Notes under the pieces: model-generated | What the model was told of the DNA's origin: nothing | The model's input: only the letters and a program-made list of their open reading frames with translations | The model's database searches: none | Shown here: piece by piece, positions 1,458 through 64,000 of the stretch | Numbering within the stretch: the first letter of the stretch is position 1 | How the letters are laid out: every line of letters starts with the position of its first letter | Made by a program: the position numbers and the translations under genes | Assembly (NCBI GenBank): GCA_030704615.1 | Contig: CM060732.1 | Location: 29,636,001-29,700,000, forward strand | Source: Takakia lepidozioides | Taxonomy: Eukaryota; Plantae; Bryophyta | DNA: 64,000 nucleotides | Direction: 5' to 3'

Positions 1458-3218
1458 ATGGGCAATACTTGTATTGGTGCAGCAAGTAAGACCGGCTTCT
1501 TCCAAGGCTTCTCACGGACCAATTCCTTTTCTTCGACAGCCACATGCAACGGTCAGCCCACGTCCACCTCCCAGGCGGAACTCCGTCACGACCGCACCAG
1601 CAACCCGATCAGTAGTCAAGGCTCCCCAAAGCGAGACCTTGAGCATCACACTACCCAGAAAACACCCCCCATTACTAACCACATTCAGCCTGTTGGGGCT
1701 GTCCATAACTACGAGCAGTTTAAAGAGGTGATTGAAGCCATGAAGAAAGGTGGGGAGGTGAAGGTGACACCAGGGCAAAGCCTGACTGCCGCAGTGCTTC
1801 AGCGGCAGACGGAGAATCTTAGGGACTTCTACACTCTTGGGAGGAAGCTTGGGCAGGGCCAGTTTGGTACCACTTACCTGTGCATTGAGAAGGCCACCAG
1901 CAAGGAGTATGCTTGCAAATCCATTGCCAAGCGAAAGCTCATTTCGCAAGAAGATGTAGATGATGTGCGACGGGAGCTGCACATCATGCATCACTTGTCG
2001 GGGCACCCCAACATTGTGACCATAAAGGGGGCTTATGAGGATGCGATATCGGTTCATCTAGTGATGGAGCTGTGTGCAGGGGGAGAGCTCTTTGATCGCA
2101 TCATACAGAGGGGGCATTACAGCGAGGCTCAAGCAGCCCAATTGACACGAACGATTGTGGGTGTGGTTGAGTCTTGCCATTCATTGGGAGTCATGCATCG
2201 GGACTTGAAGCCTGAAAACTTCCTTTTACTCAATAGGAATGAGGATGCAGCTCTTAAAGCTACCGATTTTGGTTTGTCTGTTTTCTTTAAGCCCGGCGAT
2301 GTGTTTACAGATGTGGTGGGAAGCCCCTACTACGTTGCCCCAGAGGTGCTTCGCAAGCACTATGGCCCTGAAGCGGATGTTTGGAGTGCCGGTGTGATCC
2401 TTTACATTCTTCTTAGCGGGGTTCCTCCTTTTTGGGCTGAGACAGAGCAAGGCATATTTGAGCAAGTGCTGAAGGGAGATTTGGACTTTGTATCCGATCC
2501 TTGGCCAAAGATCTCTGAGAGTGCTAAGGACTTGATCCGCAGGATGCTCAACCCGCACCCTGGAAAGCGTCTGAAAGCTCACCAAGTCCTGAGCCATGCA
2601 TGGATTCGTGAGGACGGGGTGGCACCAGACAAGCCTATTGACTCAGCCGTGCAGTCACGACTCAAACAGTTCTCAGCCATGAACAAACTGAAGAAGATTG
2701 CTATCCGAGTTATTGCAGAGAATCTGTCGGAAGAGGAGATTGCGGGCTTAAAAGAGATGTTCAAAATGATGGATACAGACAGCAGCGGTGCAATTAGTTT
2801 TGAGGAGCTGAAGGAGGGCCTAAAAAGAGTGGGCTCCAATCTTATGGAGGCAGACATCAGAACTCTCATGGATGCTGCTGATGTGGACCAGAATGGTACT
2901 ATAGACTATGGGGAATTCCTGGCCGCCACCCTACACCTGAACAAGATAGAGCGGGAGGAGAACTTGTTTACTGCCTTTTCATACCTCGACAAGGATAAAA
3001 GTGGCTACATCACCACTGATGAGCTGCAGCAAGCGTGCATTGAGTTCAACATGGGTGATTTATGTGTGGAGGATCTCATCCGGGAAGTTGACCAGGACAA
3101 TGATGGGCGCATAGACTACAATGAGTTTGTGACAATGATGCGCAAGGGCAATGGTGGTGTTGGGCGTTCTACCATGCGCAACAGCTTGAGCCTGTCTGAT
3201 GTGTTGATGGTGGGCTAG
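1458..3218 (+). CDS. CPK: Calcium-dependent protein kinase (CDPK/CPK), single coding exon, 586 aa
   Basis: Kinase motifs [26 protein letters not shown]. Junction [22 protein letters not shown], then four EF-hands ([48 protein letters not shown]). N-terminal MGNTC myristoylation/palmitoylation motif. Confidence 0.97.
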
Positions 3219-4550: not shown

Positions 4551-5087
4551 GTGCGAGGAAACAGACACTTCAGGAAACAGAGAAAAACAAAAACCATCAA
4601 CGTAGAGCAACTATAACTGCTACTTCCGTTTACTGCCTCAACACATACAGTTTCCCGTTACATAAGGTCCAATTTGGGATCGCTGTTAGTTAACGACGGG
4701 TTGTTGTGAGCAAGCAGAGTCTCCAGAGAGTGAAGGGCAGAGAGGAAGAGGAAGGAGTCGGGAAGAATTGGGTCCCACAAATGCCGCAATGGCGATGGAT
4801 TGCTGCAATGACCTCTGGTTGTAGGATCGAAATCCATTCTCAGAAGCTCACTGTAGTAGGTATTTAGATCACAAGTTTTCAAAAGTTCACTTCTGTGGGT
4901 TTTCTACTGAGATCAGACTTCCAGACGTTTGAGAGATCTATTGATTGATGGCAGGTTCATTGAACAATTTTTTTCATACGGGTACTTCTGTCCGTTCTAA
5001 GGTGGCACAAGGTTGGCAGATCTCGGATTTGGCTGGAGGTATGTGGATTTGTGACAGGTGCATACAGAAATCTTAGTTCTGTGAGTG

Positions 5088-11000: not shown

Positions 11001-14000
11001 TGAAAGCTGAAAAAAAGATGAAAGATAGGAGTAGACTTGTTAGCCTGAGTATTTTTTAAGTGCAGGTATCAATCACCCCAACTTTTGTGGTCCACTATGA
11101 CCATGTACGACTTGTTTTTGACCCTGCCTTAAGAACATCTTCTTAAGCACATGAATGAAACAAGTAGTACGTTAATTTGTCTTGATGCCATTGATTGAGC
11201 CTTTGAATTTGAAAGAGAGCACATCACTGGAACAAGGTCCTTATCAGGCTGGTTGGTAAACTTCATGGAGCTGCTGCTGGATGGAGCAGTGGAAACATGC
11301 ATAGTGTAGTGCTGTGGGAATGTTTGCAACGCTGCTGGCAAGATGATGTGTACATAGAGGCAGTCTCTGACAAGTTTTTACGGTTGACTCTCCAGCTGTT
11401 TTCCAGGTTTGGCTCTTGGAAAGATGAGAGGGGATCTAAGACCATGGCAGGCACTTTGCACATACGGTGTTGACATTATTGCTCGATACATGTGATTGTT
11501 GTCTTGCCAAGAAGTGGAATTTCAGTCATCAGTGAATACCTGCAGTACGTAAGGCAACAGAATTAAAACTACACCTATACACCTTAGTGAAGGTCTCACA
11601 AAATACCCATGCGTGCGGAGCTCCATCTTGCGTTTCAGTTTGGACGTTGATTTGCTTGGTGAGGAGCAGTGTGTGTAGGCACCCAAGTTTCTGGTCTGGT
11701 GTGAATTGTCTGATGTCCCAAGGCAGCTCATTAACATTGAAAAGAAGTATCTCAGCAGTCACTTTTCCTTCAGGACCTGTAAATTCCATCAGTAAACGAG
11801 GTGATTGGTAGCAGTACTCTGTGTGGTGCAAACTGCAGGTATGCAACATGGTTGTCAACAGGCCTGGCTGCGCGCAGGGCTGGAACTGTGGTGAACAACC
11901 CTGGAGGGGACTGGGGACTTGTAGCTGCCCCCGAGGATTTTGTTCTTGTATGTGCTGATCTGAGACATTCTGTTTTTGACATTTCTAACCTTAGTACAAC
12001 CTACCTCTATGGAAAGCGACTAAACACAAATATTTGTACTCATTTAGCTGAAGTCTGAACAAGCTGGTTTGTGAGCCCGGCATCTGACACAGGAAGGAAG
12101 GAAGGTAATACTGAAAAGTGGAGAGTATGGGGTAGGGTTGACACTTCAGAGGAAAGCTGAAATTGAATTGAAGGACTGAAGCTTACAGTCTCAAAGCTTG
12201 TTGACAAGCAGGTGAGGCATGATGTGGAGCTTTTGGTGGACATGGTGAAAGGGTCCTACATGAACCATGTACTTGGGCTGTTGAGTGGAACCCCTGAGGA
12301 TGTCCGTGCAGTGGTATGCCAAAGCCTGTTGCAGGGTGCTCAATCATTGCTAGCGATTGTGCCTGGCCTCTCTGATGTCCTCACAGAGGCATTGGCTGAA
12401 AAATGTGTGGAGGTTAGTGCTTTTGTCTTGCCCATAATATTGTCCTCTCTCTCGGTTTCGTACATCTGTAGAGTGCCCCCTTGGGTCTCCCGTTGACATA
12501 ATTATTGTCTTCCCTTCTCTTTTGATCGGCTATGTACCATGGGTTGGCGAAGTTGTGCAATATACCTCAGACTGGGTGGTTTTATTTCCCTTGGACTTTG
12601 TAAAGTTTGTTTCTTTCTATGTGTCTAACAGTTCACACTCCAGTGTTACAGTGACAGTGTGTCTCACAGTGGCCCAGTGATAGTCATTGGGTACATTCTC
12701 TTTTTCCCTTGCATGAAACAGGACATGGCTTCAATTGGTTGCATGAGCAGATTTCCTTAGGATCTTACAGGAGGGATCCGGCAGAAACATGCTGGCATTG
12801 GATCATTTGCCGTTTATTATGATGCTACGGTCATCAATTACGATAATGGTCAAAGTAGGCGTTCCAGTCCAGCTCAAACCATAGGTAATTGCAATGGCAA
12901 ATATGGTGGCAGGTGCTAAGACAAGCAAAGGGAATCACAGCAACATATCGGATGACCAATAAGCCTCTTCCGAGTCGGCCATCTCCCTACGTATCTAGTG
13001 TTCTTCAGCCTCTCAAGGTACCTCCATGAGTTCTTTCGATCACTGCAATTTGGGGTTGTGGCATCTCTGTCTCATTCATTCCCTCTCTTCTCTTCCCTTG
13101 TCCTTTCTAATGTTGTGATGATTGACTGCAACAAAGTCATTAAACCAGGTTCTAGGTGCATGAACTTAGTAGAATGAACACAACACTTTCCTCTGTTACT
13201 AAGAGTATTTTTTGCTCAATGTCTTTTCAGACTTTCATTGAAGATAAGCGTTCTGCATATTTGACAAAGGAGATGCGGGAGAAGCTGCTTGTGTCTGTAT
13301 GCAAAAAGATAACATCGGGCTATGATGTGCTGGCACACGAGATCGTTACTGTGGTCCGTATTTCATTGTCTTCAAAGGGGTGTTACTCAGGTTTGGTGTT
13401 TCTAAAGTTGAAGTGTGACCTGTTGGTTACGTGCAATGTCAAGTCTTCTGTATGGATTGGCACTAAACTATCTGGACATCTAGTGGGTTCTTTCCTTGGA
13501 TTATAAGTTGGTTTTGACCAACAGTGGTCTGGTGGTTGGTCAACATCAGGCTAGGAAAACAGAATCATCGCTCCAGCGGTTGAGACAGGGAGCACGCCAG
13601 CGCGGGGCTGGTGCTGGAACTGACGCAAATGACAATATGTCTGACAGTCTGTGTGACAAAATCTGTGCTCAGCTCTTCCTTGATGTCCAGGTATATTGTT
13701 TAGTGCATCTCTTCACAGGGAAAAAGAGGCTTATGTGACCATCTTTTGAGCCCAGCATACCACCTTAGGCAAATCTGTGAATGCACTTAAATTGCTTATT
13801 ATGTTTCTAGGATGCACTTTATTCAGGATGATCCATGCCCCTCCCACCAACTGGGATTGCTTCCATCTCATGGATAGAAGGATTGATACAAAGCCTGTGA
13901 GGAGAAAAGTTGGACCTTGCCAATTTCTCAAATATTTCCAAATTTCTTTTGCACTGTCCCTTTGCTGGTTCGATGAAGGTAGAAAAGTGCAGCAAACACT

Positions 14001-14410: not shown

Positions 14411-16078
14411 GCACCTCAGCCCAACAGTGAAGGGAGCCTACTTCAATTGTGGGAATTCAGTTGAGGCTGGTGTACCAATCCAAAAGAAAAGAAAACAGCA
14501 TTCACGTCCAAGATTAAAACAATCTTAAAATCATTTCTGAAGTACATACAAGTGAATCGCCCTAATAGACTTCCAGTGCCCTTACATGTATTGTCCATTC
14601 TTAAGGCCACCTGTTTGTGGTCCTTCAAACTATCATGTGCCTCAGATTGTTCACAACACATGTTAGACCATCAGCGTACATCTGGATTGCCTTTTGATTC
14701 CAAGTTATAGCAGGGGATTGAATTGGTAACGAGGGGTGGGTGGTGGGTGGTTTGCACAAATGATTTGCACACAAGATCCTACAATTTTTACTGGATTAAC
14801 CATTGATGGAAGAAGGGACATTGTTGGTTTACATCACGGCTGCAGTCGGCCCTTCATATCTGTTAATCTTTGGGAGTAAGAAAAACTGTAACATTTAAAG
14901 GATTGTAACACTTTAACAGATAAAATTCTTAGGATCAATGAAAAGTTTCATTTATAAAGTTCACTCTTACATAAGGAGCCCTAAAAAATGTTCACTTTAA
15001 CCCTTAAGCGCCCGGTGCCCAATGTTGACTTTTTGAAAAAAGTGGACCCCAGCTCAGAAAAATGAGAATATCTCAGCGAAAAAAAAGTTTTTGGGAAAAT
15101 TGACCGGACATTATGCTCATACCTACCCCTTCCACACACCGGTAAATTTGCAGGCCAATCAGGCGAAAATCCACCGTTGAGTGTGGGGCCCATTTTTGGG
15201 GCCCCTCCCAAAACAATAAGGGAAATTGGAAAACAATAAGGGAAATTGGAGGAATTTGCAATTTTCACTGACGGGATGAAATCTGCAGGATCTCATCCTG
15301 CTTACAGGTGTTGTCCAGCACATTGGCATTCTGATGAGCCATAGAATGCAAAAAATGGATTCATATTTTCTGATTTACACCTGGTCAAAGTAAGGGGGGT
15401 CAAAATGTGTGAGTGGGAATTGAACCCAGTGGCCTGCCCCAACTGGCAGCTCATACAAAGAAAGACCGACATGTGGCCAACACTAGCATCAAATCAGACT
15501 CAGAAAAACTAGAGATGAACCCACATTTACACGCCGAATTGTGTGAGTGGGAGTTGAACCCACTAACTTGCCCCAATTGGCAACTCACACATGAACACAA
15601 GGGGGGAGACTCCTCCCCAGGGAGGGAAGGAGTCTCCACCCTTGTGCGCACCCCCGCTTGACTAGGGGACTACCACATAATTATACTAGACACAAAGAAA
15701 ATGGACTCAGTCGTAATTGAAACACAAAATTGTTGCAGCAAAGACCTCGGAGCTACATAAACACTAAGGCAAAAAGCTGGAGTAGCAAACAAATCATTCA
15801 GATCAGGACTCAGTGAACCCCAATACTGCACAACCACAAAATTATACCTCTCCTTGGACTGTCAAGCGACTCTCTACGGCTGGATCCTCAGTACAAACGT
15901 TTCATGGCTACCAACAACAAACCAACCCCCAAACACACCACTGCTTAGAAAAAGACAGAACACCACTACATAGAAAAAGTGTCGTAAGGAGGATACCCCC
16001 TCTTTGGCATCAAAGGTCTCCACATCAGTGTAGTAAGAAATCAACCATATCAATTACTGAACATAGAAGTATCTATAA

Positions 16079-18191
16079 TCAGAGAAGGCTATGGCTCTTG
16101 ACAAAGCATCCTCCAAGGCACATATACACATCTCCACACGCGTGACAAAAATACCTTTGACGCATACCGCACTGAACACACTTCCTCCTCCTACTAGTCT
16201 TGAGGGAGAAATGCACAGACCCCGGGTTGGGCACATCTGCCCCTGGCATTACCGTTCTCCTGGGAGGAACCCACCCCACAATTAGTCTCTTTGCAACCTC
16301 CAAATTGAAAAGCATGTGGCTAAGAGGAATGTGAACCCTTTCCCCTCATAAAACCCAGGTACAATATGTAAGCATTCACCAAAGAAGTGTCAACTCCATG
16401 AAAGTACAAGCGGTGCCACCATTTATGGTCTCTGGTCTGAACAGAGTAGTAACCCCGTAGCTGATCCTGAACATCCACTCCCCGCATGTGCTGCTGGTAA
16501 TGAACCACAATAAGGGAGGTAGGCACATCACGTCTTGCCCCTTTGTGCCATCTTTGTATGAAGTAATCAGGACCGACAGGGGAAATGGAAGTGGAAATCA
16601 TGGTCACCAACTTGGCATCCATCCAGGCAATAGCGGCTACTTTGCCACTTATGTGAACACGATATTCCAGCCTACCTCTCTCACCCTTTTTCCCCAAATC
16701 AAGGCACGTAGGAAAACCCACTCGGGAGGTTTTTACCGTGCCAGTAGCATAGATCTGTTTTGCTGCCAAATCATAGAACAGGATGGGGCTACTGAAAAAA
16801 TTATCCATCGTTACAATATGGCCCTTACCCTCAAATCCTTCTAGTAACCTTGTCACCACGCCATATCCACTGCCATGGGTCATATCATTCCCATCATCCT
16901 TCCCAAGGTAAACCTCTAACTTCTGAACATATTTGGAACATGCACCATACAAACACCACACCTTCAGACCCCACTGCACAGGCTTCTTGCTCAGATATTG
17001 CTGGATTCGGGCATATTTGCCCTTGTACTTCACCATTTGCTCATCCACAGTCAAATTCTGCTCGGGGCTCATGTAGGTGGCATACAAACCATTTAGTGCA
17101 TGTAGCAACCACCTGGTTTTAGCTAACTTATCAAAAGCAGGGTCAGTGTCAATAGTGCATACATCCTTGTTGTCAACAAGGTGGAGGCACCTCAAAATTG
17201 CCTCCCATCGGTTGCGGGACATAATGCGCATGATGGAAGGGCAATTGAAGAAGGCATTGTTGGCTTTCCAATACAATCTAGTACTAGGCAATTTTTTGAT
17301 TCCCATGAGCATGTGAACAGCAAGCCAAGCCTTCAATTCACGGATGGTGATAGGGTACCACCATCTACCTCCTTTCAGGTTTCCATTCTGGTTTTCTGTC
17401 CTGGCATACAAGTTGGTCATGCTGCAAATTCGGCGCATGACCGACAGTGGCCAAAACAAATTGAAAAAATCAACTGGATTTGCTGAATCTCCAAAAGGCA
17501 AACGAGGACCCGAATCCCCACCTAACCATGTAATGTCTGGCAATTCAGTAGCAGAGGAGTTCCACATGTCATCACCAAACAACTCAGCAGGACCCCACTG
17601 CTCCCAATTGGGCGGCAAATCATATAATCCCACCTCGCGCGTTGGATTCCCCGTGTCAACACAGTAGTCCATCAAGTCAGGATTGTCGATGTCAACAAGG
17701 TCATCATCTTCTGGATTATAGTCACAATCAGAATCTGATTCACTATCATCTACTTCCCCCTCAGGCAATTCAACTTCAGAATCCAACCCCAAGAGCTCAG
17801 GGATAGTGCACAACATTGAATCATCAAGATTACACACAACACAGGACTGTGACGATACCACATGAACACCAAGGATACCAAAAAAAGAGACAGTATAATT
17901 TTTTGTACCATTCAGGATGTCCCATGTCTTGTCTACCACAGTACCATATCCAAATTCGTGGGCATTGCTAGACGATGCCACATCCTGAAGGTGCAGCTCA
18001 GCCACTGCCACCTTCACTGTGGATCCCAAAATCCCTATGTCCTCCATAGTTTGGGAGTGACCAGCAGGATCACATAGTGGATTTTGAGAGTTGCGCAAGG
18101 AGTAGGTCGAATTGCCCATCTCCTCACTCATGAAATCAAAAGAGGGTTCAATACGATTACCTCTCTCCCTGGCCAATTGTTTGAGCCTCAT
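16079..18191 (-). CDS. piggyBac DDD transposase; C-terminal Cys-rich domain separated by a +1 frameshift near 16340
   Basis: Catalytic motifs LTVDEQMV, VTMDNFFSS, MRGVDVQDQ, plus KPVQWGLKVW, ATGTV and KWWHRLYF. The shifted frame continues (ERVHIPLSH)MLFNLEVAKRL..RRKCVQC..RYFCHAC..MCLGGCFVKSH (ORF 16079-16315). Confidence 0.9.
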
Positions 18192-18540
18192 CGTGGCTGG
18201 CAAAAGACGTCTGGAAGTTAGGCCAAACCTCGAGCCTCAAAATGTCGTTGACCTCTGCGCTGAACCCAAGGGGGTCTCCTTCCTCCTTGCGATCTACCCA
18301 ACCCAAAATCTCTGCACAATGGCGCCTAAACAAGTAACGAAAGTTGGAGGGCTGTGGAAATCCAGGCCAACGCACACGAGCAGGTCTCTTCAAACACAAG
18401 AGGTAGTCCTTATTCAGGCACCCGACAATCCGCTCGACTTGCTCGGTTGATGCGCCCAGTGAGCGTGCCCACTTGGCAATCGATGCAGCTTGAGTCTCCA
18501 AATGCGCAGGTGCAGGGGGAGGCAACACACCCGAACCCAT
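18157..18540 (-). CDS. 127-aa ORF upstream of, and overlapping, the piggyBac transposase (accessory gene, first exon or frameshifted N-terminus)
   Basis: ATG-initiated, protein-like composition, same strand as the transposase and inside the TIRs. A GTAATC donor-like site overlaps its stop codon. Confidence 0.5.
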   Translation of the reverse strand: MGSGVLPPPAPAHLETQAASIAKWARSLGASTEQVERIVGCLNKDYLLCLKRPARVRWPGFPQPSNFRYLFRRHCAEILGWVDRKEEGDPLGFSAEVNDILRLEVWPNFQTSFASHDEAQTIGQGER

Positions 18541-19908
18541 CTTATATTATGTAGCTTCAACCTTCATCCACCAATTTGCATATGCACACAAGGATAAACA
18601 CAAAGATGAGCTACACGATGCCCTAACTGCGCATAGTCTAGCTCAGGTATCAAACAATGAACATTGCCTTGAATGCGCACCCTGAGTATCAATGCAAAGC
18701 CGGCCCATCTTCTCTCACAGCTATGGCTCAGTCTCTGTAGCGGTGCCACAATTTCCAAGTTTCCTCAACTGAAAGAGAAAGAGATAATGGAAGATGCAAT
18801 CGGAGCACATCACCAACGGCAACCTGTCAAGGCATCTGCAACGGCAACCTACAACAAAGTATGGAACACACGCGAACGCCACAACAGACGAGATCACAGC
18901 ACAAGGGGAAGGAGAGAGACGACGCTGAAAACGCGGGAGCAAGCCAAAATCGCTGCAGAAGCAGACCCCACCTCCTACGCAGCCAAAAATTGCAACCCTA
19001 ACCAAAAAAAAAAACCTAATCGCGCGTTGGAATCCTGACTGCCATGTGGCTGGCATCCTACCCTCCAAAAATCAGGTTAATCGGTTCAAATCCGAGAAAA
19101 ACAGAGGGGAAAAACCAAAACCAATGGCCGAAAACGGGTCGAATGGGCGCTTAAGGGTTAATAGAACTATGAGAAGTGTATGTGTTGCTCTTCAATGTAA
19201 CCCCAGTAGATTTTAGAGATGCACAGTTTGCTCTTTGAAACATTGTTCTTGTAGCAGAGGTCGACAAATGTCATGCACTTGGTAGACAAGTTAGAGAAAT
19301 TTGCAAAGGGTGTAGAGATATTGAGAACGGCACATTCACATCAGACATGTATAGAATCTTTCTCACTGCCTGTAGATCATCAGCGGTGACTGCAATTTTT
19401 CCCTTGGTCATTATTCAAAGAGCGGAGTAAACAGTGTTACAGTTAGACACTTAAAACGCTTGCTTAGTGCACCCAAGTAGCCTGAGGGAGTAAGAATTAT
19501 GCTAACACATTTAGTTTTTAACCCTTGAAGGATATGGAGGTAATAGATATGGAGGGCCGACTGATCATGGATGACTGCCCAATAGTTAGGGTTTGATAGA
19601 TAGATCTGTTTTTTGGAGGTCACATTGTGTGGCGTATCACGAGGAAACAACAAACAGCAATGGTGGTGGCTACATGGGGGGATGGTGGAGATCAGGTCAC
19701 GCTCCCCACAACACAAGCATTTCCATGCAAGAAGATCGCTCGCACAGTTGGGCTTCATTCCTGACGATTCCACCGGTTGCCACAAGGTACGTTGTTTGTG
19801 TGCGATGCCTCTCGTTCCAGGATCGATTGCTTCATCGGCATCGAAGGCAGTTGATTGTACGTGCAATGGGTGATTCGCCTCCCTCGCATTTGTCTCTCTA
19901 GATCGGCT

Positions 19909-21234
19909 ATGGCCGTTCTTGCTCTGAGCAACTCTGGCTGCTTTGGGGCATTAAGAGCAGCCCCACCACATCTATGGCGGAAACCATGGGTGAGCAGTTC
20001 GAGAGCACGCCGCTGTCATGCAACACTAGCTTCTTGCTTAGAACAATCGCATGTGGTGATTTCCCCTGTGTTGGAGCATTCGCAAGTAGTGGCCCCTTCA
20101 CGGAGTATTGAGAAGGTAGTGTTGAAAGACATGACATACCCTGAGCTCCAGACTTGGGTGGAATCCATCGGGCACAAACCTAGTCGGGCTTTGATGTTGT
20201 GGAGATGGTTGTACGGGAATGGCAAGTGGGCACGATCGCCAGTTGATATGGAGGGTGTGAGCAAGGATTTCAGGGCTGCATTGGAAGAGAAGGCAGATTT
20301 CAACGCTAATTTGGCTCTCCAAGATGTGCATGTTGCTGGAGATGGTACCCGCAAGTTAGTGTTCGCGGTGGATGAGAGTGTCACCATTGAAACTGTGGTG
20401 ATTCCAGGTGCGCGCGGCCGCAGCACTGTCTGTGTTTCCAGTCAAGTGGGATGTGCCATGAAGTGCCAGTTCTGCTTCACTGCGAAGATGGGGCTTAGAG
20501 CCCACTTGAGCGCAGCCCAAATTGTAGAGCAGCTGGTGGTGGCGTCTCGATTGTTTAGTGAGGATCTCGGACCCATCACCAATGTGGTATTCATGGGGAT
20601 GGGTGAGCCACTACACAACGTGGAGAACGTGATCCGGGCTGCAAATATCATGGTCAATGAGCAGGGCCTGCATCTCAGCCCACGCAAAGTGACTGTCTCA
20701 ACCAGTGGCCTTGTGCCTCAGATTCGGCTCTTCTGCCGCAGGTCTCCGTGCTCGCTCGCAGTGAGCCTAAATGCCACCACTGATGAAGTACGAAGTGAAA
20801 TCATGCCCATCAATCGAAAATATAGTTTACAAGTGTTGCTGGATGCAGTAAGGGAGGAGGTGTTATTGCACAGACCAGGTGGGCACGTTTTCTTCGAGTA
20901 CGTGCTCCTCGCTGGCGTGAACGACACCAAAGAAGATGCGAGCAGGCTGGTGAAACTAGTAGAAGGAATTCCATGTAAGATCAACCTTATCATTTTCAAT
21001 TCACATTCAGGATCAAAATTTAAGCCTACTCCAATGCAAGACGTGTTAGCATTCCGAGATACGGTGGCCAATGCTGGGTTAGTAGTCTCTATCCGCGAGA
21101 GCAGGGGGAATGACCAGAAAATGGCATGTGGGCAGCTAGGTAAGATACTTAAACCTAATCCTCCAAGGAGGAGAAACGAAGAGAATTCAAACCCCTTAGC
21201 AGCACAACATGGCGATGCTTTTGATGTCTGCTAG
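19909..21234 (+). CDS. rlmN: RlmN-like radical-SAM RNA methyltransferase with probable organellar transit peptide, intronless
   Basis: VSSQVGCAMKCQFC (CxxxCxxC), MGMGEP, VTVSTSG, SLNAT, FEYVLLAGVND, KINLI, ACGQL. Ser/Arg/Ala-rich N-terminal extension. Confidence 0.95.
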   Translation: MAVLALSNSGCFGALRAAPPHLWRKPWVSSSRARRCHATLASCLEQSHVVISPVLEHSQVVAPSRSIEKVVLKDMTYPELQTWVESIGHKPSRALMLWRWLYGNGKWARSPVDMEGVSKDFRAALEEKADFNANLALQDVHVAGDGTRKLVFAVDESVTIETVVIPGARGRSTVCVSSQVGCAMKCQFCFTAKMGLRAHLSAAQIVEQLVVASRLFSEDLGPITNVVFMGMGEPLHNVENVIRAANIMVNEQGLHLSPRKVTVSTSGLVPQIRLFCRRSPCSLAVSLNATTDEVRSEIMPINRKYSLQVLLDAVREEVLLHRPGGHVFFEYVLLAGVNDTKEDASRLVKLVEGIPCKINLIIFNSHSGSKFKPTPMQDVLAFRDTVANAGLVVSIRESRGNDQKMACGQLGKILKPNPPRRRNEENSNPLAAQHGDAFDVC

Positions 21235-35262: not shown

Positions 35263-36819
35263 ATGGAGGGTGGGAGAAGAATCGGGGCTGGCATGGAGCG
35301 GAGGGCGACTCCTGTTGCTGCGCCTGTGCACTCGCAAGCCCTCACCAAGACATCGGGTCCCCGCAGATTTGTGCGACAGCAAGTGCCGGATAGTATTCTG
35401 AATGATCCGGCATTGAAGGATGCTATTGCGGTGCTCCCCTCCAATTACAACTTCGAGATTCCTAAAACTGTGTGGAGGGTGAAGCAGGCTGATGCAAGGA
35501 AAGTTGCCCTCCAGTTTCCGGAGGGCCTTTTGATGTACTCTCTCACAATCTGCGACATACTGGAAACTTTTGCAGGTGTGGAGGAGTGTTTTGTGCTTGG
35601 GGATGTGACGTATGGGGCTTGCTGTGTGGACGATTTCTCTGCCGCAGCTCTTGGGGCGCAATTTCTGGTTCATTATGGGCACAGTTGCCTTGTGCCAGTT
35701 GATGTTTCTCAAATCCCTTGCCTGTATGTGTTTGTGGACATACAGATCGATGTTTCACTTTTGGTTGGAACTGTGCGACACAATTTCACGAAAGGGACGA
35801 AGCTTGCTTTGGCTGGAACGATCCAATTCTCCACGGCAATTCATGCAGCGAAGTCTCAATTGTTGAGCGATTTCCCTCAAATCTTAATTCCGCAAACAAA
35901 ACCTTTGTCTCCTGGAGAGGTGCTTGGATGCACCGCACCCTCTCTTCCTTCGGGGATCGTGGACGTGGTTGTCTTCGTTGCTGACGGGCGGTTTCATCTT
36001 GAAGCATTCATGATTGCAAACCCGAATGTGAAGGCATATCGGTACGACCCCTATGCAAGGGTCCTAATTTTGGAGGAATATGATCAAAAGGGAATGAGAG
36101 ATGCACGGAGGAAAGCCATAGAGCAAGCTCAAAGTGGAAAGCAGTGGGGGATCATCCTCGGAACTCTTGGGCGACAGGGGAACCCCAGGACTCTAACACA
36201 TCTGCAGCAACGGCTTTCATCTCGTGGGATTTCCCACACCGTTTTCCTTGTGTCTGAGCTGTCTCCTTCTAAATTGGCTCTGTTCAATAAATCTGTTGAC
36301 GTTTGGATCCAAATTGCTTGTCCCCGCCTCTCCATTGACTGGGGCGAGGCTTTTCCGGCTCCATTGTTGACCCCCTATGAGGTAGAGGTGGCGCTTGGCT
36401 TTGTGAAGCCTTGGTGGATTACCAGTGAGTGGAGAGGTGGTTATAACTTTTGTAAAGATTCCTCATCAACCAATGGACTTCTCTCCTCGTCAGAGCTGAG
36501 CACATCTACCATGCAACATAAGAAGGAAGCACTGGGTACTAAGTTGGATGATATTACGTTAAAAGCTCAAAGTATATCTCAATTGAGTGATACAGAGATT
36601 CCAGGCTTAGATGTTACTAGCAAGGACAGTGGGAAAGACGGCATTGTGTTTGGGAATGGATCTGCTTATGAACAAGGGATTGGCAAAGGGGAGCATAGAG
36701 ATGGACCAGAGGTGGCAAAAGAGATTGAGGTGGGGTCCTACCCAATGGACTACTATGCAAGAGATGGAGGTCCGTGGAATTCTACATACCAGAAGGCCCC
36801 TTTGTCCAGCATTCGGTAG
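35263..36819 (+). CDS. DPH1: Diphthamide biosynthesis protein 1, intronless
   Basis: [86 protein letters not shown]. Confidence 0.97.
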
Positions 36820-49075: not shown

Positions 49076-49707
49076 GACGCTTCCCTACAAACAATATGGG
49101 ATATATCCCCAACAGATTTCTGCAGCGCTAAAGCTTGCTTCTAATTTGGTTTTTTTATTTTTGTACACCAGCCCCAGCAACCGGTGGGCGGGCCTTGAGG
49201 CCGAAACGGAAACCCCCTCTAGTCCTGCGCACATGACCAAGAAACGGGGCTGATCCGCTGGAAAAGTGGGCTGATCCGCCCTTGACACCGCTTCCCCGTG
49301 CTGATAGCGATATTCGCCCCGCGCCATCGCTCAGCCTGCGAGCTGATCCGACGAATAAAAGTAGATGAAAAAAAAAACCTTTTAGATGAAAAACAAAAGT
49401 TAGTTTTCATGTTAAAACAAAGCGTCTAGTCACCTAATGGCTCCACCCTAAAACTCTAAGTAGTAAATTTCCTTAAAATGTTATATTGAAATAACATAAT
49501 TACATATTCAAACTATATTTTAAACATATTCTACATAAGACAAAAATTTATTTCTTGTTTATTTATAAATAAAACCAGGGACAGAGGCCTGGTGAAACTA
49601 TTTTGGTATGAGTTAAATATTGATGTATAATATTATGAAACTGATATTTGGATTTACTAATTATTATTCAAATGCATTTGACACTGCTGAAATGCCTCTT
49701 GGCTTAA

Positions 49708-50753
49708 CCCCTAAAGGACGAGAGGTGTTTTTGGGTTTTTGGACAATTCCGGGACCCACCCTAACTCGTCAGCGGCTAGCTGCCCACCAACGTTCATCCA
49801 CTTTGATGAACCGTACAAACTGCTTTCTACCTACCAGATGCATAAACCCCCCAAATTTGGGGAGATTCAACCGTGTAGTTTGGGAGATTATAACATTTGA
49901 AGACGGTGCATTTTTTTGAAAATAGAAAAAACAAAGCAAAAGTTCATGTTTGACCAAGCAAATTATCTATGATCCCAAATTTTCCTGGGAGAAAAAGTGC
50001 TATATTCCTGTGAAGTGCACAATCCCAAACCCTCACACCAAATTTCACCCCAATCTGCCAAAATGAAAGGGGGGGTGCTTTGTATGTGACTAGAATGGGG
50101 GTCCAAAAAGAGACTTGCAAAGGAAATGGTATAGGCCCCATTGGGACCCCAAATTCTCCTTCATTTGGGAATTCCAACGGTCAGTCCCTCATAGGCCAAG
50201 AACTACACAAGCCTGCCCAAGAATTTCCCAAAAATTGCCTAAATCGCATTTGGGATGTGGGATTTTGTGAAATTTCCAGCCTCCTCCAGGTCAGGCAATC
50301 GGTGGCCGGAATTTCTCCTGAATCCGGTGACTTTTTCCGGGCCACACCGAGGTTTCCCATTATTTGCGAGGGCCAGCTCATTCCAGCTGTCTCCGTGTTT
50401 GTCGGCGTTTTGGGGAGGGCCTCACAAGCCCCCCACTCCAACCCCTGCCCCCGCCGCAAAATCCCACCCGCGTGGCCGCTGCCACCTGCCACGTCGACGG
50501 TCAACTGTCGTGCGCGCGCCCCCCCCCCCCCCCCCCCCCCAACCCACCCAAAATCCTGCAATTTCCAAACTTCAAAAAATTCCTGACGGCGGAGTTTTTC
50601 TCTTGTTGGGGGCGCCATAAAGACCTGCGTGTGCAGCTCGTTCAACGCTACATTTTTCGTTCAAGCCGCTCATTCATCGGACTTCATCTGTGCATGCTAC
50701 GGATGGATGAAAAATCGGGCCGACCCGATTCAGGTCGGCTCGTCGTTTAGGGG
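49708..50753. mobile_element. Non-autonomous piggyBac-type element, second family
   Basis: TTAA|CCCCTAAAGGACGAG ... CTCGTCGTTTAGGGG|TTAA (14/15-bp TIR; TTAA at 49704-49707 and 50754-50757). No transposase motifs. Confidence 0.85.
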
Positions 50754-51613
50754 TTAAAGTCCGTAGAGCCTTTTCCAATCGCACATAGCATCCAATCCAG
50801 AGAGAAACTGCACACAAAACATATGCAGCCAAATATTATATTCATAATGGGACCAAATGCCTAAGGTATTGTCCAGTGTTGGGCGGTTCTTGCCTTTGTG
50901 AAGGAACCTTCGGTTCCGGTTCCACAAATTTTTGAAGAGACGGTTCCGGATCCGGATCCGGTTATTTTTAATTAAGGCGGTTCCGATCCGGTTCAGGTTC
51001 TGACTTTTTAACATGGGGGCGGTTCCGGTTACCGGTTACCGGTTAGTTGCTGGAAAAAAAACACCGGTTCCCGGTTAGGTTCCGGTTCTTTTTAAAAAAT
51101 ATATTAAATTCTTTTAATTTTTTATTCTTCTGGAAAATTAGATGAACTGATCTGATTGGTCATACTGAGAATTTTCAACTAAAACCAGGGAATTTATTAG
51201 TAAAACAGAAGTAAATAAACTTATATGTTTTTTGTGATTGTCTTTTATGGTATATATAACTAGTTAAATACGCATGGTCTCCATTAAAAACGGAAAACCA
51301 AATATTTTATAAGTTTTCGTACGGTGTAGCAAAGAACAACTAAAACAAACTAACTACATAAGGATCTTAATTCAAAATACAAAACAAATTAAACATGTGT
51401 AATTCTATGGTTACCTTTTATGGTGCAGCAAAAGCACAACTAAAAAAAACTACATAAATTTGTTTTTTTTGGATGATGCTTTGTCAGTATAGCATACAAC
51501 AAACTAAGTACACGGGATATCACTGAAATTTTCAATAAAAATGACAAATAAACAAACTCCAATCAAAGGAGTATAATGTAATATGTTGAACAATAATTTA
51601 TCTCTAAGACAAA

Positions 51614-62145: not shown

Positions 62146-62265
62146 GACAATACCTTAGGCATTTGGTCCCATTATGAATATAATATTTGGCTGTATATGT
62201 TTTGTGTGCAGTTTCTCTCTGGATTGGATGCTATGTGCGATTGGAAAAGGCTCTACGGACTTTAA

Positions 62266-63299
62266 CCCCTAAACGACGAGCCGACCTGAATCGGGTCGGC
62301 CCGATTTTTCATCCATCCGTAGCATGCACAGATGAAGTACGATGAATGAGCGGCTTGAACGAAAAATGTAGCGTTGAACGAGCTGCACACGCAGGTCTTT
62401 ATGGCGCCCCCAACAAGAGAAAAACTCCGCCGTCAGGAATTTTTTGAAGTTTGGAAATTGCAGGATTTTGGGTGGGTTGGGGGGGGGGGGGGGGGCACGG
62501 CAGTTGCCCGTCGACGTGGCAGGTGGCAGCGGCCACGCGGGTGGGATTTTGCGGCGGGGGCAGGGGTTGGAGTGGGGGGCTTGTGAGGCCCTCCCCAAAA
62601 CGCCGACAAACACGGGGACAGCTGGAATGAGCTGGCCCTCGCAAATAATGGGAAACCTCGGTGTGGCCCGGAAAAAGTCACCGGATTCAGGAGAAATTCC
62701 GGCCACCGATTGCCTGACCTGGAGGAGGCCGGAAATTTCACAAAATCCCACATCCCAAATGCGTTTTAGGCAATTTTTGGGAAATTCTTGGGTAGGCTTG
62801 TGTAGTTCTTGGCCTATGAGGGACTGACCGTTGGAATTCCCAAATGAAGGAGAATTTGGGGTCCCAATGGTGCCTATACCATTTCCTTTGCAAGTCTCTT
62901 TTTGGACCCCCATTCTAGTCACATACAAAGCACCCCCCCTTTCATTTTAGCAGATTGGGGTGAAATTTGGTGTGAGGGTTTGGGATTGTGCACTTCACAG
63001 GAATATAGCACTTTTTCTCCCAGGAAAATTTGGGATCATGGATAATTTGCTTGGTCAAACATGAACTTTTGCTTTGTTTTTTCTATTTTCAAAAAAATGC
63101 ACCGTCTTCAAATGTTATAATCTCCCAACTACACGGTTGAATCTCCCCAAATTTGGGGGGTTTATGCATCTGGTAGGTAGAAAGCAGTTTGTACGGTTCA
63201 TCAAAGTGGATGAACGTTGGTGGGCAGCTAGCCGCTGACGAGTTAGGGTGGGTCCCGGAATTGTCCAAAAACCCAAAAACACCTCTCGTCCTTTAGGGG
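62266..63299. mobile_element. Mirror copy of the non-autonomous piggyBac-type element
   Basis: TTAA 62262-62265 | CCCCTAAACGACGAG ... CTCGTCCTTTAGGGG | TTAA 63300-63303. Confidence 0.85.
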
Positions 63300-64000
63300 T
63301 TAAGCCAAGAGGCATTTCAGCAGTGTCAAATGCATTTGAATAATAATTAGTAAATCCAAATATCAGTTTCATAATATTATACATCAATATTTAACTCATA
63401 CCAAAATAGTTTCACCAGGCCTCTGTCCCTGGTTTTATTTATAAATAAACAAGAAATAAATTTTTGTCTTATGTAGAATATGTTTAAAATATAGTTTGAA
63501 TATGTAATTATGTTATTTCAATATAACATTTTAAGGAAATTTACTACTTAGAGTTTTAGGGTGGAGCCATTAGGTGACTAGACGCTTTGTTTTAACATGA
63601 AAACTAACTTTTGTTTTTCATCTAAAAGGTTTTTTTTTTCATCTACTTTTATTCGTCGGATCAGCTCGCAGGCTGAGCGATGGCGCGGGGCGAATATCGC
63701 TATCAGCACGGGGAAGCGGTGTCAAGGGCGGATCAGCCCACTTTTCCAGCGGATCAGCCCCGTTTCTTGGTCATGTGCGCAGGACTAGAGGGGGTTTCCG
63801 TTTCGGCCTCAAGGCCCGCCCACCGGTTGCTGGGGCTGGTGTACAAAAATAAAAAAACCAAATTAGAAGCAAGCTTTAGCGCTGCAGAAATCTGTTGGGG
63901 ATATATCCCATATTGTTTGTAGGGAAGCGTCTATTCAGTTTGGTAGTTTTTGATTTGTTTGTAGCATCTCTCAAACCACGTGCATGCGCCTGTGCCCAGG

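Follow-up and report, generated by a model that had tools for sequence, protein, structure and literature searches.

Among the closest described systems to the locus reported here are two DNA transposons, piggyBac of T. ni (IFP2; structures 6x67 and 6x68) and piggyBat of Myotis lucifugus (9c0f), which carry short terminal inverted repeats (TIRs) of the CCC/GGG type, are flanked by TTAA duplications and encode a transposase with a DDE_Tnp_1_7 core, three catalytic aspartates and a C-terminal Cys-rich, zinc-binding tail. In T. ni piggyBac this C-terminal domain binds the transposon ends, and piggyBac has become a standard footprint-free transposon tool. The same transposase domain is found in the domesticated proteins PGBD1–5 and PiggyMac, which are kept as host genes without TIRs or TTAA duplications. 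Here we describe an element that shares the TTAA duplication, the TIR type, the catalytic core and, as predicted, the fold of piggyBac and piggyBat, has a Cys-rich tail in another frame as assembled, and occupies positions 14997–19161 (4,165 bp) of a 64,000-nucleotide stretch of DNA from Takakia lepidozioides (assembly GCA_030704615.1, contig CM060732.1, positions 29,636,001 to 29,700,000), the whole of which is referred to below as the window.

A survey published in 2017 recorded piggyBac in eukaryotes except plants (PMC5381638), and in a fern genome report of 2019 the name 'PiggyBac' occurs in an automatic repeat table only (PMC6890710). A 2025 survey (Nat Biotechnol), in the available part of its text, assigns fungi, land plants and algae to a piggyBac 'Group 4' and names an 'HC6H' class of Cys-rich domain (CRD), with no further particulars on plants there (PMC13461360). 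The original prediction for this stretch, made from the letters alone, had called piggyBac rarely reported in land plants; this is accurate for the older literature and has been overtaken by the 2025 survey, as far as its available text goes. We found no description of a bryophyte piggyBac in the open literature.

Ends and catalytic core of the element

The ends and the three consecutive open reading frames (ORFs) of the minus strand, here called ORF A, the main ORF and the Cys-rich frame, are as follows.

14997–15000, unstranded: left TTAA target-site duplication, read from the sequence
15001–15013, plus strand: left TIR, CCCTTAAGCGCCC, the 3' end relative to the transposase gene; 100% complementary to 19145–19157
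16079–16345, minus strand: open frame of the linker and Cys-rich domain (..PLSHMLFNLEVAKRLI.. and then the Cys motif), stop codon 16081–16079; located by tblastn of homologues
16320–18191, minus strand: main transposase ORF from its first ATG, 623 codons plus stop, with a weakly modelled N-terminal region, an acidic stretch and the DDE_Tnp_1_7 core; Pfam, PDB and AlphaFold2 (AF2)
16323–16345, minus strand: frameshift interval, the overlap of two open frames, placed by register against the nearest relative
18160–18540, minus strand: ORF A, 127 codons with its own ATG, a conserved upstream helical module; homologues, hidden Markov model (HMM) and AF2
19145–19157, minus strand: right TIR, GGGCGCTTAAGGG, the 5' end relative to the transposase gene; perfect 13-bp pair with the left TIR
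19158–19161, unstranded: right TTAA target-site duplication, read from the sequence

The element begins with TTAACCCTTAAGCGCCC and ends with its exact reverse complement, so that a TTAA at each end is followed inward by TIRs that are perfect over 13 bp and of the 5'-CCC...GGG-3' type. When the 17-mer of TTAA plus TIR is searched for in the window with up to three mismatches allowed, it occurs at two sites only, both of them element ends, and two matches were obtained in none of 100 dinucleotide-preserving shuffles. Inward of the 13-bp TIRs, no similarity was found between the two ends. The element has a GC content of 44–48%, similar to that of its surroundings, and the composition is continuous across both joins.

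ORF A, the main ORF and the Cys-rich frame were each searched separately, never as a joined protein. The main frame is open from 18203 to 16320, with the first ATG at 18191, and matches the DDE_Tnp_1_7 profile (PF13843) over its whole length (1–349 of 349; E-value 1.3e-76; 258.6 bits, cut-off 22.4), the outcome of an HMM check that had been proposed with the original prediction. Its sequence matches in the PDB are piggyBat (9c0f) and T. ni piggyBac (6x67). In an alignment of 41 sequences, Asp residues D383 (window 17043–17045) and D463 (16803–16805) occupy invariant columns and D573 (16473–16475) a column at least 90% conserved, and the motifs LTVDEQ, TMDNFF and RGVDVQDQ line up with those of piggyBat and piggyBac. 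The AF2 model derived from this alignment is confident for residues 190–620, with a predicted local distance difference test (pLDDT) of about 90 in the core, and falls below 50 for residues 1–189. A Foldseek search with the predicted core gave piggyBac (6x67_C; E-value 5.4e-26; template-modelling (TM) score by target 0.69) as the top match and piggyBat (9c0f_C) at E-value 5.9e-22 and TM score by target 0.68, with the Tn5 transposase far behind (E-value 2e-07). The core fold, as predicted, is thus that of the solved piggyBac and piggyBat transposases. What had originally been claimed for this locus, perfect TIRs, a TTAA duplication and all three catalytic aspartates, stands throughout.

Several marks of the piggyBac superfamily are present together: the TTAA duplication, the CCC/GGG TIRs, the DDE_Tnp_1_7 domain, the DDD triad and a predicted RNase H-like fold with an insertion domain. 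The element is very probably a piggyBac DNA transposon of autonomous type that was inserted recently into the genome of a moss-lineage plant. A domesticated, PGBD-like host gene is contradicted by the presence of TIRs and target-site duplication and by a coding sequence that is frameshifted as assembled. By analogy with established piggyBac biochemistry, the DDD transposase would bind the CCC...GGG ends, and the element would be cut out through hairpin intermediates and reinserted at a TTAA, which insertion would duplicate and excision would restore to its original state.

The differences from piggyBac and piggyBat are considerable. Identity in structural alignment is only 21–23%, and the window element has some 190 additional N-terminal residues, the conserved upstream module ORF A, tRNA-like folds in its 3' part, a moss-lineage host and a frameshift. 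Its tail, too, differs from theirs in having an H-C6-H spacing that zf-Tnp_2 does not recognise; the Cys-rich frame alone gave no Pfam match. The tail reads H-x10-C-x2-C-x7-C-x2-C-x5-C-x3-C-x4-H, with the same spacing in the nearest relative, P0001, and in the related loci L002 and L003 (see below), and by its pattern it would appear to fit the HC6H class as this is named in the available text of the 2025 survey (PMC13461360).

The Cys-rich frame comprises 88 codons (16345–16082) and differs in phase from the catalytic ORF. In tblastn comparisons with five homologues (P0001, P0002, P0003, P0005 and P0008) the alignment follows the main ORF as far as window position 16335 and the next frame from 16342, without a gap in the homologue. 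At this junction P0001 reads ..MKERGLKPLSHLAFNL.. (..MKERGLKPLSH..), where the window has ..FMRGKG and, in the second of the two frames, ERVHIPLSHMLFNL. Because the homologues run straight through the junction and leave no room for an intron, an intron between the two frames was rejected and the break is taken to be a frameshift. The register with P0001 is best restored at the C4 run 16342–16345, a G4 run when read on the coding strand, where there is one base too many, and comparison of the sequences suggests one extra base, most likely in that run. Since the frameshift splits off the Cys-rich domain, the copy as assembled would probably yield no full transposase and would have to rely on sister copies that are intact. 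The element had originally been described as complete and as possessing a Cys-rich C-terminal domain; the motif is there and is conserved in relatives, but a one-base shift separates its frame from that of the catalytic ORF, and 'complete' is slightly too strong a word for this copy as assembled.

That the copy is in fact fully intact and potentially autonomous, its frameshift being a homopolymer error of the assembly, we regard as unlikely. Such an error would suit the short interval to which the shift maps, with its C4 run and also C3 and T3 runs, and an otherwise unbroken element with 623 stop-free codons, an open tail of 88 codons, perfect TIRs and target-site duplication; yet real mutations by slippage are also common in short homopolymers, and long-read errors that persist through polishing typically involve runs longer than four bases.

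Relatives, host and origin

A word-based search with the transposase returned 49 proteins, the best of which, P0001 from an ENA metagenome contig, is 42% identical (42–49% across searches), together with a few named animal proteins at 29–33% identity. A profile search with the catalytic core returned 141 proteins at E ≤ 1e-10, and the named ones among them are animals only, Ixodes foremost at 39%. Neither search returned a named plant, fungal or algal protein, and no named member of Group 4 is among the rows of the trees described next. Two trees were built, one of 47 rows from whole proteins and one of 82 rows from the core only, each row covering at least 330 of 434 core residues; both are quick trees, and their supports, from the Shimodaira–Hasegawa-like approximate likelihood ratio test (SH-aLRT), come from short searches. 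In both, the window transposase pairs with P0001 (96–99% SH-aLRT), and the pair falls inside a clade of 25 rows in the first tree and 40 rows in the second (99–100% SH-aLRT). The rows of this clade are metagenome, Joint Genome Institute (JGI) or read-assembly proteins, and all named animal rows lie outside it, which is the result of the comparison with animal piggyBacs suggested along with the original prediction.

The clade members L002 (635–9805) and L010 (1020–10540) are TTAA-flanked elements of 9 kb with TIRs starting CCCTTAAA, and L009 has the same 3' end at 16962; the TIR start of these three 9-kb relatives is TTAACCCTTAAA, and CCCTTAA is common to the TIRs of all of them and of the window element. 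The window element fits a clade with CCCTTAA ends by its transposase, which lies in the 40-row clade, by its TIR type and by the presence of ORF A upstream on the same strand. In each of L002, L009 and L010, two B3 domains (PF02362) are encoded downstream of the transposase, between both TIRs in L002 and L010 and upstream of the sole end found in L009; of the six Pfam matches, whose E-values range from 4e-8 to 9e-6, five exceed the gathering score. B3 is a plant-type DNA-binding domain. No B3 remnants were found in the window element, and we found no description in the literature of a piggyBac whose conserved cargo includes a transcription-factor domain of plant type. P0001 itself adjoins the CACTA-type genes Transposase_21, DUF4216 and DUF4218.

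Some observations on these relatives may be recorded here. In the P0001 family, loci L011 and L012 have a transposase ORF that extends upstream into AT-hook-like motifs (RKRGRPPK, GRGRKRK), and the window copy is without such a motif. A further copy of that family, L001, is cut at position 5006, beside CACTA genes. The idea that L011 is a spliced transcript of the family was rejected, since L011 and L012 each represent a contiguous copy and the interruption at 5006 belongs to L001. The public gene calls for L002, L009 and L010 (sample ERZ24794443) read TGA as sense, with several in-frame TGA codons per 'gene', and the calls other than the transposase are therefore artefacts of prokaryote-style calling on eukaryotic DNA.

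The element lies between two plant genes, about 1.3 kb past the COG2 gene and 0.7 kb ahead of an RlmN-like gene. The intergenic stretch that holds it measures about 2 kb, and both neighbouring genes are on the strand opposite its transposase gene.

12212–12496, 13156–13506 and 13496–13738, plus strand: COG2_C exons
19855–21234, plus strand: RlmN-like radical-SAM ORF

The named matches of the RlmN-like protein are land plants only (Ceratodon 68%, Sphagnum 67%, liverworts 62–64% and angiosperms about 62–63%), and in a quick maximum-likelihood tree it falls within the moss clade (100% SH-aLRT) as sister to the Sphagnum and Ceratodon-type rows. Such a placement is as expected for an early-branching moss lineage and, coming from one gene, is an indication of the host. 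The rest of the window contains a CDPK gene, a Dph2 gene and hAT and long interspersed element (LINE) sequences; exact look-up of the CDPK, Dph2 and hAT ORFs as proteins gave no identical entry in the collection searched. The CDPK (1458–3218), RlmN-like (19855–21234) and Dph2 (35263–36819) genes are each one long uninterrupted ORF, and COG2 is split into exons; the seed-plant counterparts of these three genes have many introns. The uninterrupted ORFs could reflect an intron-poor genome or retrocopies.

A second type of TTAA-flanked element, non-coding and about 1.05 kb long, is present twice in the window (49704–50757 and 62262–63303), with a 15-bp TIR of the form CCCCTAAA(G/C)GACGAG that has one mismatch. 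The two copies are 97.9% identical and in opposite orientation with mirrored flanks, and they therefore represent one insertion copied with the arms of a large palindrome. Their TIR type, CCCCTAAA, resembles the TIR of L013 (CCCCTAAAATTC), an element of 5.85 kb in another branch of the same piggyBac clade, from which it follows that at least two sublineages coexist in this genome.

With these data the origin of the element can be weighed. That it entered the sequence as a contaminant, or through a chimeric assembly join, is highly improbable: nothing beyond the general possibility speaks for it, and against it stand the position of the element within the roughly 2 kb that separate two plant genes, in a single contiguous sequence and with a clean TTAA at either end, the continuity of composition across the joins, and a clade that bears plant marks of its own, the CACTA neighbours and B3 domains. 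The original statements that the element sits between COG2 and RlmN genes, and that it belongs to a plant chromosome and not to a stray contaminant, are both borne out, by the plus-strand COG2_C exons and RlmN-like ORF on either side, by the grouping of the latter with mosses and by the presence of COG2 and CDPK genes in the same window. A recent horizontal arrival from an animal or fungus, with no long-term plant lineage behind it, we consider improbable. The superfamily is prone to horizontal transfer, with more than 200 clusters across broad taxa reported in the available text of the 2025 survey (PMC13461360); the named proteins in the profile search are animals only; and the nearest relative is just 42–49% identical. 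In the other direction point the position of every named animal row outside the 40-row clade (99% SH-aLRT), the two B3 domains in each of three clade members, the CACTA-type transposase genes beside the nearest relative, the second TTAA element type in the window with its L013-like TIR and hence at least two sublineages in the genome, and a GC content like that of the surroundings. Clade membership and the B3 domains thus favour a plant-resident lineage over a stray recent arrival. It counts against this reading that the signs of the clade's host range are indirect, namely the B3 cargo and the CACTA neighbour. Of the original interpretation, which is borne out in part, the endogenous plant lineage is supported, by a clade without named animal sequences and by B3 domains in three of its members.

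The upstream module and the transposase gene

Homologues of ORF A were found by tblastn upstream of the transposase, on the same strand, in L002 (E-value 3e-8) and L003 (E-value 7e-9), at 32–34% identity, and an HMM of the ORF A family gave further matches upstream of the transposase in L010 and L014, making five loci with the window. In the window the model finds a single copy (18546–18160; E-value 2e-35). A profile search of 1.84 billion cluster representatives returned 225 proteins at E ≤ 0.001, of which 70 are at E ≤ 1e-10; the 150 of these 225 that were listed are 46–355 residues long, save one repeat artefact of 950 residues. The conserved part of ORF A, about 100 residues, is predicted by AF2 to form five helices (pLDDT 85.5). 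It gave nothing consistent in Pfam at E ≤ 1 and nothing in the PDB at E ≤ 10 by sequence profile; its model had a best E-value of 1.8 against the PDB by Foldseek, a best Z of 5.4 in the wide VIA-align comparison, under the noise level for helical models, and a TM score of at most 0.41 against the ESM Atlas. A first guess that ORF A is a helix-turn-helix DNA binder found no support in any of these comparisons and was abandoned. As modelled, ORF A is a conserved helical module without a family or fold match. A BLASTP comparison of ORF A tails with transposase N-termini gave no matches.

How this module is connected to the transposase can be approached through the sequence immediately behind it. 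In four divergent elements a canonical splice donor follows closely upon the end of ORF A coding conservation (the slash marks the end of the exon): GAG/GTAATC in the window, CAG/GTGAGT in L003, CAG/GTTAGT in L002 and CAG/GTAAGT in L010. The stop codon falls inside the donor in the window (18159–18157, with 18161 as the last exon base) and in L002. Moreover, in L002, L003, L009 and L010 there are conserved coding blocks between ORF A and the transposase ORF whose frame varies by locus; they are therefore exon-like, and the pattern makes a spliced transposase gene likely in these four relatives.

These features suggest that ORF A is the first exon of the transposase gene, a reading to which we give about even odds, and which we rank above the view that it is a separate accessory gene. 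In the latter case the element would be a two-gene piggyBac, ORF A would be translated on its own and the transposase would start at the ATG at 18191; this view, somewhat less probable, is nevertheless a substantial competitor. ORF A has its own ATG and stop; its family matches are small, and none of the 150 listed out of 225 is fused to DDE_Tnp_1_7, a point that tells against a single gene; most of these matches are prokaryote-style gene calls, in which splicing could not be seen. The ORF A frame of L014 continues for about 130 codons with no obvious donor. Further difficulties for the first-exon reading arise from the acceptor side in the window. With a minimum distance of 45 nt, the donor at 18160 can be paired in frame with just two acceptors, 17742 and 17967, the latter giving an intron of 193 nt. 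Ahead of the only plausible in-frame acceptor the transposase frame stays open over about 90 codons, some 25 of which align with P0001; use of 17967 would drop these roughly 25 codons, which look weakly conserved, and this fits a separate gene, or a second small indel, about as well as it does a first exon. The nearest relative carries an AGY serine codon where its sequence corresponds to 17967, but in L011 and L012 the region homologous to the 25 or so codons upstream of 17967 is certainly within the ORF. Against two genes stand the donor lying exactly at the ORF A coding end in four divergent elements, the stop codon inside it in the window and L002, the additional conserved coding blocks between ORF A and transposase in relatives, and the consideration that a downstream cistron on a single eukaryotic mRNA is poorly translated. 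What probability the one-gene and two-gene readings leave falls to another small indel in the copy described here.

The 3' part of the element

Behind the stop codon, towards its left end, the element has repeats and predicted RNA folds.

15210–15249, unstranded: perfect 20-bp tandem duplication (AAAACAATAAGGGAAATTGG); TRF, 2.0 copies, 100% match
15403–15457, minus strand: copy 1 of a unit resembling the top half of a tRNA, slightly degenerate, with outer stem, short hairpin and T-arm-like hairpin; fold z -0.4
15537–15591, minus strand: copy 2 of this unit, with a 52-nt core, 7-bp outer stem, UGCC/GGCA hairpin and T-arm GUGGG-UUCAACU-CCCAC; -21.1 kcal/mol, z -3.0
15596–15646, unstranded: long near-perfect hairpin adjoining the tRNA-like units; -48.6 kcal/mol, z -8.3

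The two tRNA-like units, 52–55 nt long, form a direct repeat with 84% identity and fold on the transposase strand with a T-arm-like loop UUCAACU; copy 2 passes a strict structural pattern search. No tRNA genes (ARAGORN) and no Rfam families were found in the element, and the strict structural pattern did not find the units in the relatives compared.

Implications

The occurrence of piggyBac in land plants has already been published, in 2025, in a single line of a survey, and the window element is a further, well-defined example. By description it resembles Group 4, being a land-plant element with TTAA, TIRs, an RNase H-like domain and a CRD, the last of these in another frame as assembled. The available part of that survey describes neither the tRNA-like units nor the B3 cargo nor the ORF A module (PMC13461360). 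Taking the several lines together, we tentatively propose a plant-resident (bryophyte) clade of piggyBacs with an extra conserved first exon encoding a helical module and tRNA-like folds behind the stop codon, whose 9-kb relatives have recruited a gene with two B3 domains, and whose family may still be mobile.

Taken alone, the window copy is a well-annotated example and introduces no new principle, and its interesting features belong to the clade more than to the copy. As assembled, it is, to judge from its alignment with relatives, a single base away from an uninterrupted transposase reading frame and near-intact. If the family is mobile, it would represent a native plant TTAA-specific transposon with footprint-free excision. 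A near-intact copy with defined ends in a moss-lineage genome is a starting point for asking whether plants host active piggyBacs, for building a plant-native TTAA system, and for the study of the extras of the clade: the helical module, the tRNA-like 3' folds and the B3 genes of its relatives.

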